A stretch of 20,020 nt of DNA from Paramoeba atlantica (taxonomy: Eukaryota > Protista > Discosea). The translations under genes were made by a program, and so were the position numbers. How positions within the stretch are numbered: the stretch's first letter is position 1; the number at the start of each line of letters is the position of its first letter. Where the stretch lies: the NCBI GenBank assembly GCA_977017575.1, contig CDRNVI010000219.1, positions 1-20,020 on the forward strand. The letters run 5' to 3'. Shown here in pieces: positions 2,362 through 17,190 of the stretch. The notes beneath the pieces were generated by a model that saw nothing but the letters and a program-made list of their open reading frames with translations, ran no database searches and was not told the origin of the DNA.

Positions 2362-3398
2362 TGTGAAGTGGCCAGGAGTTTGGAGAAGGAAAAAGTGGGT
2401 GGGTGAAGGAAAGAAAGAAAGGGAAGAAAGGGAAAAAAAAGAAAGAGAAAAGTCAAGAGCAAATTATGGGAAAGATTGGCAATGCATTGCAAAGGAAACC
2501 AATTAAGTAAGTTTATTCCTTTTACCAACAAACAAAAAAAGTATTCATATGAAACAACAAATATAATAAATGTAGAATTGACAAGAAGCAAAACAGAATG
2601 AAAGATAAAAACATACAAGAAAAAGAATGTGGCAGAGAAATTAAATCATAGATAAATGTTACAGAACATAGGATTAATTGATGTAAAGATAATATGAAAT
2701 AGATAAATAAAATGGTGTGAAAATATTAAGGGAACAACTTGAATTTAGAGTGAGAACTGGATGGGAAGAGCTCAGATGAGAGAGATAGAAATACATGCAG
2801 AATCAAAACAGTTTATATAATCTTACAAATGTTTATTAGGGATATTCACACAACAGGGAAGCACAGTAGTGTACAAAGAGAAACAAATTAATTTGCATAA
2901 CATAGAATTAGTTCACACCAGGATTCTGATACACTCTTCCAAATGAATATGTTTTACATAAATCAGAAGAAAGAATTTCACAACACATTAGAAATCAAGA
3001 ACAATTAAAGCAAAGCAGCAAAACAAATAGGATTTATATTTAACATAGCAAATCAAGATGAGACAAACAGACTCCATCATTAAACCAAATATTAAGCCAT
3101 TGAGGAAATCAGAATAAATCACAAAATCACAGAAACAAATATCAGTTGAATAGAATGGAAAAACATAAGGGATTGGTGCAGAAGCAATCAATAATCCAAA
3201 ACATATTACTTTGAAGCAAAAGAGGGATTAACATGAGAGCACAAAAGATAATCAGAGAACTTAAGGCATAGACATGAAGAACAAGACAAGAGAATTCAAT
3301 TCAAAAATTCAAAAATAATACAACCCAGGGAAGGAGAAGTCAATCCAACAAAAACAGCAGGAAATAGGAAGAAAGGAATTTGTGTTCACTATTGGAAA
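2362..3398 (+). pseudogene. Decayed A-rich coding-like sequence, probably TE-derived (LINE ORF1/gag-like); continues at 9384 beyond the copia insertion
   Basis: Strong purine skew on the + strand, broken Lys/Glu-rich frames and no CpG seen. One frame reads ICVHYWK|HRWC across the reconstructed copia empty site. No firm domain assignment. Confidence 0.4.
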
Positions 3399-3799
3399 TG
3401 TTACGAACCCTGTTCGGTTGTCTTCTATTCAATTTGATGCCATCCTGTCGCTCCGCTCCTCCGATTGATCACCGCTCTTTCTCTCTCTCTTTTCCCTTTC
3501 TCTGTTGTATTTTTCCCCTTGTATTATTTTCCCTTTTCCTATTTTTCCTGATGTTTATTTTATCCCTTCCTGATTTGATTTTGTCCTTGTTTCCTTCCAC
3601 AAAAACGCTGTTTTTGTGTTCCTTTTTATTCTTGTCACGATCACATCTCAACTGTCTTTTCACTGCCCTCACATTTCTCTCTCTTGAGCAAATGTTCACC
3701 TTGTTTGTTTCCTTGAATAAATCTACATTTTCGATTTGATCTTTGGTTTGGCTTTGCTTTTGTTTTGTCCGTCTCTCCTGAGATCCAGTCGATCTGACA
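3399..3799 (+). repeat. 5' LTR (401 bp)
   Basis: Starts TGTTACG, ends CTGACA. No differences seen versus 8978-9378. Very pyrimidine-rich on the + strand; AATAAA at 3716-3721. Confidence 0.97.
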
Positions 3800-3830
3800 G
3801 ATTAAGAGTCTAGGCTTGCCCCTGAGCCAC
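3800..3830 (+). promoter_or_regulatory. Primer-binding site complementary to the 5' half of tRNA-Lys(CUU)
   Basis: Reverse complement of 3800-3811 is AGACTCTTAATC, the anticodon arm of eukaryotic tRNA-Lys(CUU) as I recall it. Reverse complement of 3822-3830 is GTGGCTCAG, resembling tRNA positions 7-15. No TGG-type PBS follows the LTR. Confidence 0.75.
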
Positions 3831-3904
3831 TCTCGAGCGTGAAAAGAAACTTGTCTTGAACGCGACCTGTGTGTGAAGTTGTTCACATACGATAAGCTTT
3901 AATC

Positions 3905-6900
3905 ATGGCCGACGTACAATACCCAGCGAAAGAACCTTCCAGGAGCGATTTGAAATACTTGAAACCGATCGAGAACAAGTTCAGAGGTGACGATGACCCC
4001 ACTTACGAAACCTGGAAACATCAGATCAAAGGTAGGCTGATGCAAGCCCGAGTATTGTATCACATACAAATTGACGATGAGAATGATCTTGTTGCCCCTG
4101 CAAATGAGGAAGAACCAGCGAAGAAAACACGAGAACAAAGAATGATAAACCGAATTGTCATCGCTTCCTTCTTGACGGACTGTATCTCAGGACCACCTCT
4201 GAAATACATAACCCAAGATAGATACCTCTCTCGACCCCACTCGATTATAGCGGTGCTTGATAACCACTATTTGAAGGACACTGAGGGAGAGTTGGAAAGA
4301 ATTAAAAAGGAGATTAACGACTTCAGAAAGAGCGAAAGCGAAGATATTTCTGCAATGGTTATTCGCCTTTTGAACCTGAAAAACCGTTTTGAGAGAGCTG
4401 GTGGCGATATGGATGAGGATATGAAGTGCAACATCTTATTAAAAGCACTTGTATCGAGGAAATGGGACCAGACGACACTTGACATTAAGAAAAGATATAA
4501 GAAGAAAGAAATCAAGTATGAAGATATAATAGCAGAATACAAAATGACAGAGAACCACTTTAAGAATCGAGACGCAATTCGAGACCAAGACGCCAAGATA
4601 CAAAGAGCAAACGCAGCACACCAACAACAACAACAGAACCAGAACCAGAATCGAAGACAGCAACAACAACAACAACAAAGTCAGAACCAGTACCAGAACA
4701 GAGGATCAAGAAGAGACAAGTACGAGAAATTTAGAAACATAAGTGGATGGGAAGAACCCCCGAAAGGACCTCGAAATTGTTTCCACTGTGGAAAGCCTAA
4801 CCACCGGACATCTGATTGTTGTGATGGACAGAAGCCACGTACACAAGCTGGAAAAGACGCAGAGGCTGCTTTCGATAAGTACCTGAAAGAAAAAGGAGAA
4901 TGGAATTGCAAGATGCATAATAAAAACATCATGGTTCCCGTTTACTCTTTTCTCTCTTTCCCTCCATCCTTGAAAAATACTGCTCCTATTGAAACAGATG
5001 ATGAATTTCTTATTGACTCTGGTTGCTCGAACACTATTGTGACCTCTGAAGATAGAATAATGAATACTCGAAAACCTGACCCAATTGTTGCTATTTCGCA
5101 AGCGAACGGTGAATTAATCCCTGTTTCTCTTGTGGGTGATTTAGAATTGGAGAAAAGTCTTCCCCCTATTGAGAATGTTTCTGTTGCTCCCGAATGCTCT
5201 ACGAACCTGCTGTCCGTTTCACAAATGTGCAAATTGTGGAATGCTTCTGTTATTTTTGATAAAGACGGTGTATCTGTGACGAAGAAATCGATTGATCTGC
5301 CTCAAGCTGAAAAGATATTAAGTGGACCTCTCCAGAATGGACTGTATAATGTTACCCTTCCAAAGGTAGATGTACAAGAAGCTTATTGTACGAAACTTGT
5401 TGAAGAAGCTGATCCTGAAGAATATATCGGACCAAAAGTTGATAACCCTAAACGAGTGAGACACACACTTCGCCCACAACGTGAAAAAGAATTAAAATTA
5501 TGGCATGGACGAACTGGACATCAATCTGGACTTAGAAGAACCATTAAGGCCAGAGCGATCCACGGTTTGCCCGATAATTACCACAAATTAATTGCTGACC
5601 CGAATGATGTATGCGACGCCTGTGTGTTTGCCAAAAACAAGAAGCAACCCCATTACGCTGGTACGAGAACTTTTCGCCGCCGAGGTGAGATGCTTCACAT
5701 TGATCTCCATGAAAAATCGACACTCTCTTATCATCACAACCGATATTCTATCTCTATTATTGAAGATTACTCTGGTGCTGATCTCTCTCGCTTCATTAAG
5801 AAGAAATCTCGCGCTGGAAGAACCATCATTAATGTAATCCGAAAATTGGAGAGACAAGCTGATGTGAAGGTGAAGATTGTTCAATGTGATGGCGCTTCTG
5901 AATTTATTGGAAAGAATACTGATCTTGGAAGATTTTGTAGAAACAAAGGAATTGAAATTCGACGATCCAGTCCTGACTGTCCTGAGGAAAACGGTGTGGC
6001 TGAGAAAGGAAACGAAACTCGTTGGAATACTGCTCAAGCAATGAGGCTCGCTGCCCGTCTACCTCCTAAATTTTGGGAATTCGCTGAGAGGATGGCTAGT
6101 AAACTGATATCTCTGATGGTAAAAGAAGGACAAGAAATTACCCCTTTTGAGAAATTGTATGAGACAAAACCAAGCATGAATTTGATACGAACTTTTGGTT
6201 GTCACGCTTTTGCCCATATCCCTCGCGACCAACGTTCTAAAACTGACCCGAAATCCCGAGCTGCTATTAATCTGGGACCTGCTGAGAATATGAATGGATT
6301 TTTGCTTTACGACCCGATTGCCATGAAAACTTTTCAATGCTCTAATGTATTATTTGATGAATATGCGTTCGGCATTCCTGAGTTGAAAGAAAGAATTAAG
6401 AATAAGAAAATGCCAAGTTATTATGACCAGGCGAAATATGAAGATAATGAAGAAATTAGAAATTTACCGGTACGAACAAGAATGGATGACCTAAAGAACT
6501 GGGACGCTGGTTTGATGGATGATCCACCCTATGAACATGATGAAAAATATGAACGAGACGAATCTGATGACGAATTTGTGGAGACTGATAGTCCTGCTAG
6601 AAGAGCGCAACCTGTTGATGAACTGCCGAATACTTTTGATATTTCAAGAACTCTTACTGGACACTCCAATGTGCATTCAACTGATGAGACTGACGAAAAA
6701 GAAGACACTATTGATGATGATTATGATAGTGAAACAAACCCTTTGATGAAAATCGACCTTTTAGATGAATCAAAAGGACCTGAAACTGAATCGGAGGATG
6801 ATGTGGATAATGACCCTAAAGTTGATCTATTTTTACCCACCCCTTCAATGCAAGGAAGAACAACTTGCCCTCCCACCCCCAGAAAAAGACCCCTGAAGAA

Positions 6901-8944
6901 TATTTCTGGAACTACTACTCCTCAAACGAACCCCATGAGAAGTAAAACGAATACCCCCATGAAAATCGTGAATACTCCAAGACGAAAAATTGATTTTTCT
7001 CCTCCTTCTCCCAAGGAAGCCGAACTTCCTGCTACTGAAGAAACTACTGAACCTGAACATCCAACTAGCACACGACCTGGCAGAGGAGTGGAAAGATTTG
7101 ACTACAAGAAATTTCACACGAAAGGATTGAAGAACAAAGATAAGACTGAACAAGCGAAATTGGCCAAATTAGAAGGAGACCTACAATCCAACACCGAACA
7201 TACCTACCAATCTCATAAGAGGAAATGGAATGATGGAATGAAAGCTGATCTCGATGCCCTTGCGAACGAAAATACCTCGTTACCTCTCTTTCTTCAACAA
7301 GCTTTTGCTGCTGAGCAGGTTGTTTTTGACAAGATTACTCCCAAAACTTTTAAACAGATGAATAGAAGTAAAGAAAAAGGAGAATGGATAGCTGCCTGTC
7401 GACGTGAAATTGAAGCTCACAAAGAAAATAACACTTGGACCCTTGTTCCCAGACCGAAACCAAATCAAGACGGAAAGAAACATATTATTATGAGAAGTCT
7501 GTGGCGATTTAAAATCAAGACTGAGAATGGAGTGATAACCCGATTCAAAGCCCGCTTGTGCGCCGATGGAAGCTCTGTGAACCGAAAACTGAAAGCTGAC
7601 CCCAATATCGAATTTGAGGATAATTACTCTGGATCTGCAACCTCGACTTCTATGAACCTAACCTACGCCATTGCTGCTGCCTACGGACTTGAAGTGCATT
7701 CCGGTGATGTACCCAGTGCCTATGTACAATCAGAAATGCCAGAAGGAGATGTTGTCTATTATGTGGAACAACCTGAAGGTTTTGCTGACCCCACAAAGCC
7801 TGACCATGTTTGCAAACTGAACATGGCCCTCTATGGAGTCCCTGTTGCTGGACAAAGATGGAATTTGACCTTCCGTAAATTCCTGACTGAAGAACTAAAA
7901 TTTGTTTGCTGTGATTCTGACCCAAACCTCTACATTCGTCGTGAACAAGATGGAAATTTTTGTATTATGCCCACTGCTGTCGATGATACTCTCGATATAT
8001 GTACTTCACAAGAACTCCGTGAAGAGATACATGCGAAATTATACAAACGATTCAAATGGAAAAGCTCTGGAAGTTGCGATTGGTTTCTTGGCTGCTCTGT
8101 AAAACAAAACTTTAAGGAAATCTCAATTGACCAACGTGCATTCTTGGACAATTTGATCAAATCTTTTGAACGATTTAATCCTAAGCCTGCGAACAACCCT
8201 GCAATCTCAACCTTACTAAGCGAACCGGAAGAGGATGAACCCAAAACTGACTTCCCCTACTCCAGCCTTGTTGGTTCCCTCAATTGGCTGACGAAGACCC
8301 GACCTGATATCTCTTATGCCGTATCACAATGCTCTCGCTACCTCCACAACCATTGCCAAAGACATGATAAAGCTGCTTTAAGAATCCTCGGATATTTGAA
8401 GAAATTCCCAGATTACGGACTGAGTTTTCCGAAATTGGATGATAATGAAAGAAAGGATTTATTTTTTGACGCTTACTCGGACTCAAGTTTTTCCGACTGC
8501 CCTGATGATTGTACCTCCTCTTATGGCTATGTGACGAGAATTAATGGAAGACCCATATCTTGGCGATCAAAGAAAGAACCCCAGATATACCTATCCAGTT
8601 GTGAAGCTGAATACCACGCGATGACCGAAACTACAAGAGAAATAACATTTATTGAAAATTTACTATGCGAACTCGAGTTACCCCACAACAAACCTGTGAT
8701 TCTGAATGTGGATTCTGAACCTGCAAGAGCGATTGCCACGATTCCTCGAGTGACCCAAAGAAACAAACATTTCAACCGAAAAGACCATTATGTTAGACAC
8801 AAAGTTGCTGATGAAACAGTTGAAATTAAACATGTACCCACTGCTGAAAACCTTGCTGACATTTTTACCAAACCCCTGACCCCTGCGAAACTTAATCCCT
8901 TGAGAGAAGATCTTATTTCCCAGTGTGCTGCTGGAGATCACTGA
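3905..8944 (+). CDS. Copia gag-pol polyprotein, 1679 aa (Gag with CCHC knuckle, aspartic protease, integrase, reverse transcriptase, RNase H)
   Basis: CFHCGKPNHRTSDC 4778-4819; protease IDSG 5012-5023; WHGRTGH 5501 and CDAC 5612; integrase Asp 5702, Asp 5888, Glu 6002 (PEENGVAE); RT KARLC, GDVPSAY (Asp 7706), AVDD 7976-7987, YSSLVGSL; RNase H YSDS 8474, SSCEAEY, NLADIFTKPL. Confidence 0.97.
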   Translation: MADVQYPAKEPSRSDLKYLKPIENKFRGDDDPTYETWKHQIKGRLMQARVLYHIQIDDENDLVAPANEEEPAKKTREQRMINRIVIASFLTDCISGPPLKYITQDRYLSRPHSIIAVLDNHYLKDTEGELERIKKEINDFRKSESEDISAMVIRLLNLKNRFERAGGDMDEDMKCNILLKALVSRKWDQTTLDIKKRYKKKEIKYEDIIAEYKMTENHFKNRDAIRDQDAKIQRANAAHQQQQQNQNQNRRQQQQQQQSQNQYQNRGSRRDKYEKFRNISGWEEPPKGPRNCFHCGKPNHRTSDCCDGQKPRTQAGKDAEAAFDKYLKEKGEWNCKMHNKNIMVPVYSFLSFPPSLKNTAPIETDDEFLIDSGCSNTIVTSEDRIMNTRKPDPIVAISQANGELIPVSLVGDLELEKSLPPIENVSVAPECSTNLLSVSQMCKLWNASVIFDKDGVSVTKKSIDLPQAEKILSGPLQNGLYNVTLPKVDVQEAYCTKLVEEADPEEYIGPKVDNPKRVRHTLRPQREKELKLWHGRTGHQSGLRRTIKARAIHGLPDNYHKLIADPNDVCDACVFAKNKKQPHYAGTRTFRRRGEMLHIDLHEKSTLSYHHNRYSISIIEDYSGADLSRFIKKKSRAGRTIINVIRKLERQADVKVKIVQCDGASEFIGKNTDLGRFCRNKGIEIRRSSPDCPEENGVAEKGNETRWNTAQAMRLAARLPPKFWEFAERMASKLISLMVKEGQEITPFEKLYETKPSMNLIRTFGCHAFAHIPRDQRSKTDPKSRAAINLGPAENMNGFLLYDPIAMKTFQCSNVLFDEYAFGIPELKERIKNKKMPSYYDQAKYEDNEEIRNLPVRTRMDDLKNWDAGLMDDPPYEHDEKYERDESDDEFVETDSPARRAQPVDELPNTFDISRTLTGHSNVHSTDETDEKEDTIDDDYDSETNPLMKIDLLDESKGPETESEDDVDNDPKVDLFLPTPSMQGRTTCPPTPRKRPLKNISGTTTPQTNPMRSKTNTPMKIVNTPRRKIDFSPPSPKEAELPATEETTEPEHPTSTRPGRGVERFDYKKFHTKGLKNKDKTEQAKLAKLEGDLQSNTEHTYQSHKRKWNDGMKADLDALANENTSLPLFLQQAFAAEQVVFDKITPKTFKQMNRSKEKGEWIAACRREIEAHKENNTWTLVPRPKPNQDGKKHIIMRSLWRFKIKTENGVITRFKARLCADGSSVNRKLKADPNIEFEDNYSGSATSTSMNLTYAIAAAYGLEVHSGDVPSAYVQSEMPEGDVVYYVEQPEGFADPTKPDHVCKLNMALYGVPVAGQRWNLTFRKFLTEELKFVCCDSDPNLYIRREQDGNFCIMPTAVDDTLDICTSQELREEIHAKLYKRFKWKSSGSCDWFLGCSVKQNFKEISIDQRAFLDNLIKSFERFNPKPANNPAISTLLSEPEEDEPKTDFPYSSLVGSLNWLTKTRPDISYAVSQCSRYLHNHCQRHDKAALRILGYLKKFPDYGLSFPKLDDNERKDLFFDAYSDSSFSDCPDDCTSSYGYVTRINGRPISWRSKKEPQIYLSSCEAEYHAMTETTREITFIENLLCELELPHNKPVILNVDSEPARAIATIPRVTQRNKHFNRKDHYVRHKVADETVEIKHVPTAENLADIFTKPLTPAKLNPLREDLISQCAAGDH

Positions 8945-8967
8945 TCAATTTGAGATGACTTCAAATT

Positions 8968-8977
8968 GGGAGAGGTG
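8968..8977 (+). promoter_or_regulatory. Polypurine tract (plus-strand primer)
   Basis: gggagaggtg immediately upstream of the 3' LTR. Confidence 0.85.
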
Positions 8978-9378
8978 TGTTACGAACCCTGTTCGGTTGT
9001 CTTCTATTCAATTTGATGCCATCCTGTCGCTCCGCTCCTCCGATTGATCACCGCTCTTTCTCTCTCTCTTTTCCCTTTCTCTGTTGTATTTTTCCCCTTG
9101 TATTATTTTCCCTTTTCCTATTTTTCCTGATGTTTATTTTATCCCTTCCTGATTTGATTTTGTCCTTGTTTCCTTCCACAAAAACGCTGTTTTTGTGTTC
9201 CTTTTTATTCTTGTCACGATCACATCTCAACTGTCTTTTCACTGCCCTCACATTTCTCTCTCTTGAGCAAATGTTCACCTTGTTTGTTTCCTTGAATAAA
9301 TCTACATTTTCGATTTGATCTTTGGTTTGGCTTTGCTTTTGTTTTGTCCGTCTCTCCTGAGATCCAGTCGATCTGACA
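8978..9378 (+). repeat. 3' LTR (401 bp)
   Basis: Same length and, by eye, same sequence as 3399-3799. AATAAA at 9295-9300. Followed by TSD GGAAA. Confidence 0.97.
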
Positions 9379-10655
9379 GGAAACACAGGTGGTGCATTGA
9401 ATCCTCAGAAATGCTATGTTCATTCATCATTGAGTGAGGATTGGAAGGGAGAAAGGATAAGTGTTCAACAGGAATTACTATTGCATAGTTCCTCTGGGTA
9501 TGCTACATTTACTCATCATTGAGAGAGGAAGGTGTTGAAGATGTTGAAAAGAAGAATTTTTCAAAGAAAAGCAAAACAAGTCATCATAAGATGAACCAGT
9601 GAGATTGAGAGTAGAAAATCAAAATGTTTTCAACAAAAACAAAGAAATCAAAAGTTCAGCAGAAATTATCAAGGTGTTACAAGCTTCAGAAATGATTGGA
9701 AATGGGCAAGAAAGACATTGGACAGAGAGCAACAGGAATGAAGCACAACAACAACAAAAAAGACAAAAAAGATCATTCAGAATAGTGTTGAAAACATGGT
9801 TCAGAGGCAAAGCATTTCAGGTACACATTTTCAAAATTTAGGGAATGAATTTTCAAAGATAAATCACACATCATATATGTAAAAACAAATATATTGTTAC
9901 ACAAAAGATAAATGTTGATCAAACCAACAAATGTTACAATTGCATTGAGATTTGAGAAGAGAGGTGAGAAAAACACAAGCTGAAAGAAGAACATCAAAGA
10001 AAAAATGTTATGAGGCCAGTGAAAATCCATTGCAAAGGTGAGAAAAACAAAGACTCAGAGAGTTAGAGAAAATAAAACTCAGAACTCCCTTGAAAGAACA
10101 AAAATGAGGCAATGGAGTTACAAAAGAACAAAAAGGGGACATGAGAACTCCCTTCAAAGGTAACAGGTGTCTCAAAAGCAAAGTAATGTTGGAGGGCATT
10201 GTTTAAGGGATTGCAAAGACAAAAGCAATTATTAAATTGCAGGCAAAACAGAAAGAAATGAGATAACAATCTTTAAAAATGATGATAACATTGAAACAGA
10301 GGAAGAAGAAACAATATTCACAATCAACCATAAAACAAGAGAGAATTGAAAAGTGAAAACCAGATCAAAAGATTAAATTGCACAACAATAATTTGATAAG
10401 AATAAACTATGGGGAATAACAAAGGAAATCAAATAATACCAAAATATTTTAGGTGAAGCCAAGAAATTAGTTACAAGTCACACAAACACTCCCTTTCAAT
10501 TTGATATTTTGATTTCATCACAATAAAGGCATTTCAAAACAAGAGAAAGTATTAACCATCAAATCACAAAACTGAATCAATAGAGGAAATCCAAAATCAA
10601 CTTATCAAAAACCAAGAAAAAACTTAATTCCAATAAATCAACCAATAATTAGAAT

Positions 10656-11291
10656 AGGATGTAAATGGTACAAGATGCTCAATAGAACTTGCTGAAAATA
10701 AAGCCATTACAAATTAAATTCAAGAATCAGCATCATTACCAAAGAATAAACAAAAACATGAGACTATGATAGAAGGAAAAGCAAATTGAGGTTTTTCAAA
10801 AAAAAAAGAAATTTAGAATAAAGAGTATTGAGGACAAAAAAGAAGCATCAGCAATTGAATCAACTTCAAAACAAACAAATCAAATTAGAAAGGTTATAAC
10901 TTGAGGGAAAGTGCAGTAACCAAAATCAAAACAGCTTTGGGGGTGGTACATCTGAAATGACACAAACACAATTTTTTAATGAAATATCCTTTTAACACCA
11001 AAATGGATTTCAAAATTCAAGTAGGAATATCTGAGAGAGGAATCCAAGTGAAAATAAAGTCTAGAATCAAAATCACAAAAGGTAAAAGGAAGGTATAAAT
11101 TCAACAATTTCAAAGCAAAAAAGGAAATTAGAAGAATTTCCATTATCAACCAAAAACAAAAGAATAAGAAGAATCATCCTGAGGCATCAATCCAAGAATG
11201 ATAAATTCAAAATAATATTGTTACAAGAAAAACAAGAAGATGGAATCAATTATTTCTTCAATAAAATCAACACAGGGATGAATTCAATTAG
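10656..11291 (+). repeat. Dispersed repeat (module L), inverted copy at 19385-20020
   Basis: atgtaaatggtacaagatgctcaat through caacacagggatgaattcaattag aligns colinearly over about 635 bp with the reverse complement of 19385-20020. Confidence 0.93.
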
Positions 11292-11876
11292 AAATAAGAG
11301 TTCAAATTCACAGGTAGGGAATTTGAGATAACAAGATGAAAAATCCAAAGAGATTAATAATAAAGTACATTCAGATTCAAAAAGTACAAATTCAATCTAG
11401 AATTACTTTGAAAATATCAGGAATTTTTAAGAATATCATCAAGACAGAGGGAAAAATTCAATCAAGCTTTGAGGAAACAAAACAAAATGAGAAATTGTCA
11501 AACATAAGAATAAATCCAGTCAAGCAAATCCACAATCACAAATTCACAATCAGAAATGGCAGTTGAAGAACAAAAATCTGAAAATACAAATCCATGAATC
11601 CAAAATGAGATAGAAATGAGTATTAAAACTACACAACCATCATTCAATCAATACAAATGATCACAAATATTCATTGAATCAAGAGAAAAAGTTTGATTAG
11701 GGCTCAACTCAAAATCAACAATAAAATAATCATCAAAATGCAATTTGTAAGCATGAGGCAAACATCAACAAAGACCAATTGAAATAACAGAAGGAATTAC
11801 AAAAATTTTCAAATAGAACCAACAATCACAATATCCAACACAAAGAAGAGATTGAGGAACATGAAGAAGCTTTGAG
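11286..11876 (+). repeat. Dispersed repeat (module R), direct copy at 1769-2361
   Basis: Colinear alignment with 1769-2361. Confidence 0.93.
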
Positions 11877-12552
11877 AAATGTTGACAAACAAAACTCAAG
11901 TCAAGATTATACAAGGAAACAGTGTTGTGTAAGCTGAAGTTGTTCAGAATGTTAATTCCAAACAATATGTTGTTCTAAAAGCATAACCAAAGACAAATAA
12001 CCAAAACAAACAATGAGCAAGAGGACTGAATTGATTCACCAATAAAAATGAAACATGGAAATCAACAAGAAATCATCTTAAGCAAATCAAAGGCAGAGAA
12101 AATCTATAAAACAGAAATAAAATCAAAAGAACAGTTGGGCAAAACAAAGAACAAAGTTAAAACAGAGTGTCATAACAGGCAAAAAAAAACATTGACAAAT
12201 ACAAAAATAATCTCCAAGAAACAAGAAAAATAACATGAATCTTCTATAACATAAGGAGAAAAACAAAAATAGATGTGATCAGAACTGTGTTTATTGAAAA
12301 ACCATGTGCTAAGTCAAAAATGGCTGCCAGAAATATAATTCAAAATAGTGCACACCAGTATAAAATTGTAAGCTGAAAAAACAAGAAAAATAATCAATAA
12401 AGATAGGGAAAAAGTGAGGCAAAGTAAAAAGAAATTGAAAGGCAACACAAACAAAATATTGGAAGTTAAAAAATCAAACACAATTTTCAAAACCATTCTT
12501 GCAAAGAAGGAAAAAAGTAATAAAGTGAGAAATTCTAGAGGTGTCCTTTCCC

Positions 12553-12875
12553 AATTGTAGCATAATAGCTTAGTTGGTAAAATAACTATTGCTTCAATTC
12601 AAGGTTGTAGATTCAAATCCCAAAAAGGAAAATATTAAAACATTATTTTCTCTTCCTACTCACTTGAATGTGAATTACAGAATAGATTATTCTTTGTTCT
12701 GTCTGCTAAAAAGCAGAGAATAAATTCCTTAAGAAGGAGTTTGAGTGAATTAAAGGTCTTTAAACCATTTGAACTTAAAGAAGTGAAATTCTATCCTTGT
12801 TATTTTTAACCTTAAAAAATTAGTGGCTTTGGGTTAGACCATCATCTAATAAAGTCCAATATTAAAAAAAAAAAA
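12553..12875 (+). mobile_element. tRNA-derived SINE-like element, family 1, copy a (about 320 bp)
   Basis: A-box tagcttagttgg 12566-12577; B-box gattcaaatcc 12610-12620; AATAAA 12848-12853; poly-A 12864-12875; 16-bp TSD agaggtgtcctttccc (12537-12552) / agaaatgtcccttccc (12875-12890); homologous copy at 16994. Confidence 0.85.
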
Positions 12876-16356: not shown

Positions 16357-16993
16357 AAAAAACAGTTAACTCTTGGCCTCAATACATCTTCCTCCAGGAA
16401 ACCTATGCAACATCTGAAAATGATTTTAATCATCTTAAGAACTACTTGAGGAAGTACATTTGGTTTTGTGATTCCTTCTCAGAGAGGAAATGTAGTCTTA
16501 TGATTGGAATTAGACATGTGAAAGGATTGAAAGATCTCATTCTCTTCTTTTTTGAGAAAAATGAAGGTAAATCATTTGGATTAAAAGTTTTCATCCAAAA
16601 TCAAAAATTCTTAATCTTCAATGTTTATCACCACCCTGGTTTGAAACTGGAACACCTAATGGAAGAATCTTCCTGATTTTTCTCCTAAAGCAAAAATATT
16701 TTGGTTAGGAATCTCAATTGAGATTTAAACAAAACCAATTGCTAGAAATTAATTGAACACCTTTCTGATATGAATTTGTCTTGCCTCAACTAGTCAAAAC
16801 CCATCCATTTTCAGGGGCAGTGTATTGATTATATTTTCCTTTTCTTGAAGGCTCCTGAAGATCATTTGTTTATAAATGGAATCTTATTTGGTTTTAAAGA
16901 TCATATTGTAATGATTGAAGGGACCAGTGTAAAAGAGTGGAAGATCAACTCTTGGAAGAAAAGAATTCCTGAATACCTAATTAATAACCCTAC

Positions 16994-17190
16994 AATTGTA
17001 GTATGATGGCTTAATTGGTAAAACAGCTATTGCTTCAATTTAAGGTTGCAGGTTCAAATCTCAAAGAGGAAAATATTAAAAATATTATTTTTTCTTCCTA
17101 TTCATTTGAATATGAAAAACAGAACAGGTTATTTTTTGCCCTGTTTACTAAAAAACAAAGAATATTAATATTAATATTAATATTATTATC
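16994..17190 (+). mobile_element. tRNA-derived SINE-like element, family 1, copy b, 3'-truncated
   Basis: Aligns with 12553-12722. A-box tggcttaattgg 17007-17018, B-box ggttcaaatc 17051-17060. Ends in (aatatt)n repeats with no matching TSD. Confidence 0.82.

Follow-up and report, generated by a model that had tools for sequence, protein, structure and literature searches.

A Ty1/Copia retrotransposon in the genome of Paramoeba atlantica carries, directly after its 5′ LTR, the exact complement of part of the anticodon arm of the host's own tRNA-Lys(CUU). The element appears to be a recently inserted, competent copy that starts minus-strand synthesis in the Hemivirus manner, from a half tRNA; judging from the sequence, we give this reading a probability of roughly 0.85. 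It lies in the stretch of contig CDRNVI010000219.1 analyzed here (positions 1 to 20,020, referred to below as the window), where it occupies positions 3399-9378 and is intact, with 401-bp LTRs at both ends, a 5-bp target duplication, and one gag-pol ORF (Table 1). The structure of the element, the exactness of the complementarity, the adjacency of the site to the LTR, and its conservation are shown directly, and from there a cut at nucleotide 40 of the tRNA, a modification at G26, and any pairing of 3814-3830 with the D arm are inferred.

Table 1. Parts of the Copia element and their positions in the window
Feature	Position	Strand	Remarks
Target-site duplication GGAAA, left copy	3394..3398	+	Same 5 bases flank both LTRs
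5′ LTR, 401 bp, TG..CA	3399..3799	+	100% identical to 8978-9378; identity ends at 3399 and 3800
Primer-binding site (PBS) core	3800..3813	+	Exact complement of host tRNA-Lys(CUU) nt 27-40; kept after the LTR in at least eight families
Possible PBS extension	3814..3830	+	Gapped, imperfect complement of tRNA nt 7-25; 14 of 19 positions matched, G26 skipped
gag-pol ORF, single, 1679 aa	3905..8944	+	gag with CCHC knuckle, protease, integrase, RT (AVDD), RNase H
Polypurine tract GGGAGAGGTG	8968..8977	+	Adjoins the 3′ LTR; read directly from the sequence
3′ LTR, 401 bp, TG..CA	8978..9378	+	100% identical to 3399-3799
Target-site duplication GGAAA, right copy	9379..9383	+	Same 5 bases flank both LTRs

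The Pfam domains of the ORF follow the Copia order: Retrotran_gag_2, Pol_BBD (aa 368-442), gag_pre-integrs (aa 525-577), SH3_retrovirus (aa 753-822), and RVT_2 (aa 1175-1433). An RVT_2-type RT with the integrase upstream of it, LTRs of the TG..CA type, a 5-bp target duplication, and a polypurine tract before the 3′ LTR are all features of Ty1/Copia elements (Pseudoviridae). Identical LTRs and an open frame indicate that the insertion is recent and the copy probably competent. The catalytic motif of the RT (7976-7987) reads AVDD instead of the usual YVDD or FVDD; the 1679-aa frame is otherwise open. When window positions 3389-9388 were compared with runs X1-X3, the window copy departed from other copies in the organism's reads almost entirely by C>T and G>A changes: each of these two types accounts for about 90 places, and no other type reaches 6. 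The excess is compatible with a RIP-like mutation process.

The first 1828 positions of the window form a tandem array with alternating 187- and 195-bp spacing (a 382-bp unit), whose copies are 100% identical at the 382-bp step. The Copia element is flanked by direct repeats at 1761-2349 and 11278-11864 that share 85-92% identity and are separated by 9.5 kb. Subtracting the Copia element would leave about 3.5 kb between them, so the insertion may have hit an older LTR-like element. Further downstream, two tRNA-like stretches (12552-12640 and 16993-17081; 88% identical) have box A/B-like motifs and no ARAGORN call, and may represent decayed tRNA genes or a tRNA-derived repeat.

The assembly containing the window (45.7 Mb in 248 contigs) has many tRNA genes, and ARAGORN identifies the host tRNA-Lys(ctt), with 29 gene copies by our count containing the core 11-mer of the site. 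The main form has the D arm GCTC-AGTCGGTA-GAGC, then G26, then the anticodon arm CTAGA-CTCTTAA-TCTAG, which is the arm that the original prediction, made from the window sequence, had deduced for the primer. The 14 bases directly 3′ of the 5′ LTR are an exact complement of nucleotides 27-40 of this tRNA, and the match reaches 15 nt (3799-3813 with nt 27-41) when the last LTR base is set against nt 41; the minor form, with the arm CCAGA..TCTGG, matches the site over 14 nt. The major form is found as dispersed single genes on a few contigs, and the minor form occurs in a tight cluster of nine tRNA genes spanning less than 1.1 kb (L035, 758-1804; G000 C53).

Because the LTR boundaries are fixed (Table 1), the PBS quoted in the original prediction begins at the first base past the LTR; positions 3800-3830 read as quoted, their reverse complement divides into the proposed parts of a tRNA 5′ half, and the LTR is not followed by TGG. 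Both the identity of the proposed primer and its position are borne out, the pairing with nt 27-40 stopping at the published end point of half-tRNA primers (PMC1181622). Another tRNA had been expected to pair better were the proposal wrong; among 29 distinct host tRNAs sampled from the retrieved loci, the initiator tRNA not among them, the runner-up to tRNA-Lys(CUU) matches 3795-3840 exactly over 8 nt, roughly the chance expectation for a search of this size.

Direct reading finds no TGG anywhere in 3800-3830, and hence no ordinary tRNA 3′-end site there. Canonical priming by a complete tRNA through its 3′ CCA, from a site displaced downstream of the LTR, would have to use TGAGCCACT at 3822-3830, which approximates the complement of tRNA-Lys(UUU)'s 3′ end with one G missing. 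This near-match has no complete TGG, its exact part is just 8 nt long (about chance expectation), the LTR is 22 nt away, and sister family A2 has not retained it; priming of this kind is very improbable. A site beside the 5′ LTR, exact to nt 27-40 and without a 3′-CCA site, has the form of half-tRNA priming.

The genome has 64 occurrences of the core 11-mer (tRNA strand), compared with 7 of its reversed control. We sorted the 64 matches into 29 in tRNA-Lys(CUU) genes, 29 directly after an LTR end, and 6 elsewhere, the last figure being about that of the control. The site GATTAAGAGTC(TAG) stands directly 3′ of the LTR end (..ACA or ..TTA) in at least eight LTR families, labelled here A-H, which otherwise differ from one another in their LTR ends and leaders. 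Within the window family, another 5′ end (C189) has all 31 nt of 3800-3830 unchanged, and a further one (C140), in a copy rich in transitions, keeps them but for one G>A in the core. Conservation of the motif, which had been proposed as a check, extends both to the other copies of the family and across families, judged on copies as they stand in the genome and not on any reconstructed sequence.

Some of these families are distant from one another. Measured on RT matches found at the expected distance from the site, identity to the window RT is about 70% for family E and 61-65% for C, and falls to 30% for D, 27% for G, and 31% for H; no RT was found adjacent to the site in family B. In G and H, a second copy of the 151 bases upstream of the site occurs 5.1 and 6.0 kb downstream, respectively; its last base corresponds exactly to the one preceding the site, so that the LTR boundary is fixed in both. 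That families with unrelated LTRs have the site in common, and that the site matches a tRNA, argue against Tf1-like self-priming, in which the 5′ end of the transcript would fold back onto the site and then be cut. The original prediction had counted better pairing with the element's own 5′ end among the outcomes that would tell against a tRNA primer; the LTR contains no complement of 7 nt or more to 3800-3830, so the fold-back of the Tf1 type is lacking and self-priming is scarcely credible.

Outside this genome, the nearest RT-RNase H matches are metagenome proteins, and the closest of them (46% identity in RT-RNase H) is encoded on a contig with the same 14 bases after ..AACA. A 17-mer scan of metagenome contigs found 17 loci, three of which are tied to Copia pol and show Copia pol, then an LTR, then the same site (L107, L115, and L116). 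Four more of the 17 (L109, L111, L119, and L120) look like pieces of bacterial tRNA-Lys(CUU) genes in which the match is lost beyond the anticodon stem, a pattern reminiscent of junctions where mobile elements have integrated into tRNA-Lys genes. A relative at 40% identity has CGTTATCAGCACGG at the PBS position, which to us reads as an edited Ile anticodon arm, and a Fusarium element has GGTTATGAGCCC, an initiator-Met arm, at that position. The best named fungal matches show 32-33% identity in RT-RNase H; L105, the only one of them inspected, carries a half site of the iMet type. Ile-like and iMet half sites at the same spot suggest that anticodon-arm primers have been swapped among these relatives.

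We propose that host tRNA-Lys(CUU) is cut after nucleotide 40 and that RT would extend the resulting 3′-OH into U5. G3800 pairs with C40 by sequence complementarity, and the first base would be made opposite A3799, the last base of the LTR; a start there agrees with the LTR end seen beside the target duplication. The 3′-OH of nucleotide 40 is the published primer end for Copia elements that use half tRNAs (PMC1181622), and the ICTV profile sets Hemivirus apart by its short tRNA segment as primer (PMC8515867). Later in the cycle, plus-strand strong-stop synthesis from the polypurine tract would recopy the 14 primer bases and halt at G26, a base that is probably N2,N2-dimethylated. The core match ends at nt 27, and the neighbors of G26, as read from the sequence, are G10:C25 and C11:G24. 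Such neighbors direct N2,N2-dimethylation of G26, and the host genome encodes Trm1 at two loci. A halt at G26 would explain why the site is 14 nt long and would renew it in each cycle.

The original prediction also described the PBS as bipartite, with a second block matching the D-stem region and GTGGCTCAG expected at nt 7-15 of the tRNA. Its first part, the core, is exact to nt 27-40. The expected string is not found in the host, where nt 7-15 read GTAGCTCAG, one mismatch from the element's GTGGCTCAG, and the second block of the window family is weak: against shuffles, the gapped alignment (Table 1) gives P = 0.089 and the duplex energy (-20 kcal/mol) gives P = 0.044. Nor is the block specific to Lys, as the Arg(CCG), Asn, and Ser tRNAs score equally high. 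Positions 3814-3830 are identical in C189 and C140; these 17 nt match no other gene, only the three copies of the family, and sister family A2 shares only CTGAG.

Complementarity to the D arm is clearer in three other families. The leader of family D matches tRNA nt 6-40 with a few indels (P < 2e-4 against shuffles), family G has a D-arm complement after the core (P = 2e-4), and family H has an exact 9-nt complement of nt 16-24 after a 7-nt spacer (P = 8e-4). On these comparisons we treat the D-arm extension as real in families D, G, and H and as marginal in the window family. Extra tRNA-template pairing outside the core site is familiar from Ty1 (boxes 0, 1, and 2.1), from the bipartite site of Ty3, and from the U5-T-arm contact of HIV-1 and RSV. 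The idea of an additional contact is common to those systems and to our element; they use whole tRNAs primed from the 3′ end, whereas here the putative contact would be with the D arm and the primer a half tRNA.

A truly bipartite site, whose leader (3814-3830) would form a long gapped duplex, needed for priming, with the D arm of the tRNA 5′ half, or whose leader would have been recopied repeatedly from the primer whenever plus-strand synthesis passed G26, is a serious possibility to which we give somewhat less than an even chance. Past the core, leaders can be aligned, allowing indels, with the complement of tRNA nt 6-25, strongly in D, G, and H; summed over families, the two Lys tRNAs (which have a common D arm) come out on top of the 29 tRNAs; the window leader cofolds with tRNA nt 1-40 at -42 kcal/mol; and a collinear C opposite G26 occurs in none of the families of this genome: A-C lack the position, family E shows G or A there, and family G shows T. 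Weighing on the other side are the marginal block of the window family itself, which other tRNAs equal, the retention of CTGAG alone in A2, and the relatedness of families A, B, C, and E, which are hence not independent. In addition, a clear extension is missing from the three metagenome Copia elements that share the core, although their host tRNAs are not known.

The end of U5 adds a further observation. In families B and C, and less so in E, the final ~20 nt of the LTR, just ahead of the site, compared in five loci, resemble the complement of tRNA-Lys(CUU) nt 42-56 (P 0.005-0.02). Taken together, U5 end, site, and leader look like a near-whole antisense tRNA, interrupted by TCACA or TGACA. 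The window family has no U5-end complementarity to the 3′ part of the tRNA.

These U5 ends bear on the proposal that the primer is a stress-type 5′ tRNA half, which would couple transposition to tRNA-half production. Such a half would agree with a match that is limited to 5′ sequence of the tRNA, namely nt 27-40 and perhaps on to nt 7. Known anticodon nucleases, however, cut in the loop and leave a 2′,3′-cyclic phosphate that is unable to prime, whereas a primer needs a 3′-OH. Pairing in our element reaches nt 40, which lies in the stem, and the U5 ends of B and C hint that an intact tRNA may anneal first. We consider a stress half unlikely and prefer cleavage of tRNA-Lys(CUU) at nucleotide 40 to yield an extendable end.

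Even where RT identity drops to 27-31%, every one of these Copia lineages has, after the core, a gapped complement covering most of the 5′ half of tRNA-Lys(CUU), which in family D extends to nt 6. The indels of the leaders fall at G26 and within the D loop, where tRNA bases are usually modified. Tentatively, this could mean either that half-tRNA priming needs a long two-part duplex or that leaders are repeatedly rewritten from the primer when plus-strand synthesis runs past m2,2G26, and the U5 ends of B and C hint at docking of an intact tRNA that is then cut on the spot.

Half-tRNA priming has been known since copia. The Hemivirus-type elements (Drosophila copia, 1731, yeast Ty5, and Volvox Osser) resemble the window element in having a site that adjoins the 5′ LTR and pairs with an anticodon stem-loop, in Copia gene order and a 5-bp target duplication, and in priming at nucleotide 40 (PMC1181622). 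Their primer is initiator tRNA-Met, in contrast to the elongator tRNA-Lys(CUU) here, and the likeness drawn here is one of structure and priming mode. Priming by half-tRNA Met and Ile has been described in plants (PMC6317226), and half-tRNA Tyr, Ile, Asp, and iMet sites in rust fungi (PMC10886601). Bianca (Ile, plants) and Puccinia Copia and Helenus (Tyr, Ile, Asp, and iMet) illustrate that Copia lineages switch anticodon-arm primers (PMC6317226; PMC10886601), though to tRNA species other than Lys.

The closest precedent for the primer itself is the fungal FunCo1 clade, whose PBS, ATTAAGAGTCT, matches a stretch inside tRNA-Lys (Donnart et al. 2017; PMC5445492); the same 11-mer occurs in the window element at 3801-3811. 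The report consists of one sentence, in which a check against host tRNAs, the limits nt 27-40, and the D arm are absent (PMC5445492). The FunCo1 hosts are fungi, whereas ours is a protist, and the best named fungal matches to our element are as distant as noted above. Since half-tRNA priming with several tRNAs, including an internal tRNA-Lys site, was already in print, the novelty claimed in the original prediction for a tRNA-Lys half as primer was overstated.

What is new here is a host-verified case of a tRNA-Lys(CUU) half-tRNA primer with exact pairing limits (nt 27-40), together with a choice of primer that is common to many Copia families in one protist genome. Tools that seek only 3′-end sites report "no PBS" for such elements, so the finding should help LTR annotation. 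The young, intact copies provide a tractable system for an old open question, the cutting of the tRNA at nucleotide 40. The complementarity to the D arm, if real, is the more interesting part; if leaders are indeed rewritten past m2,2G26, they would hold the footprint of a tRNA modification left in the genome.
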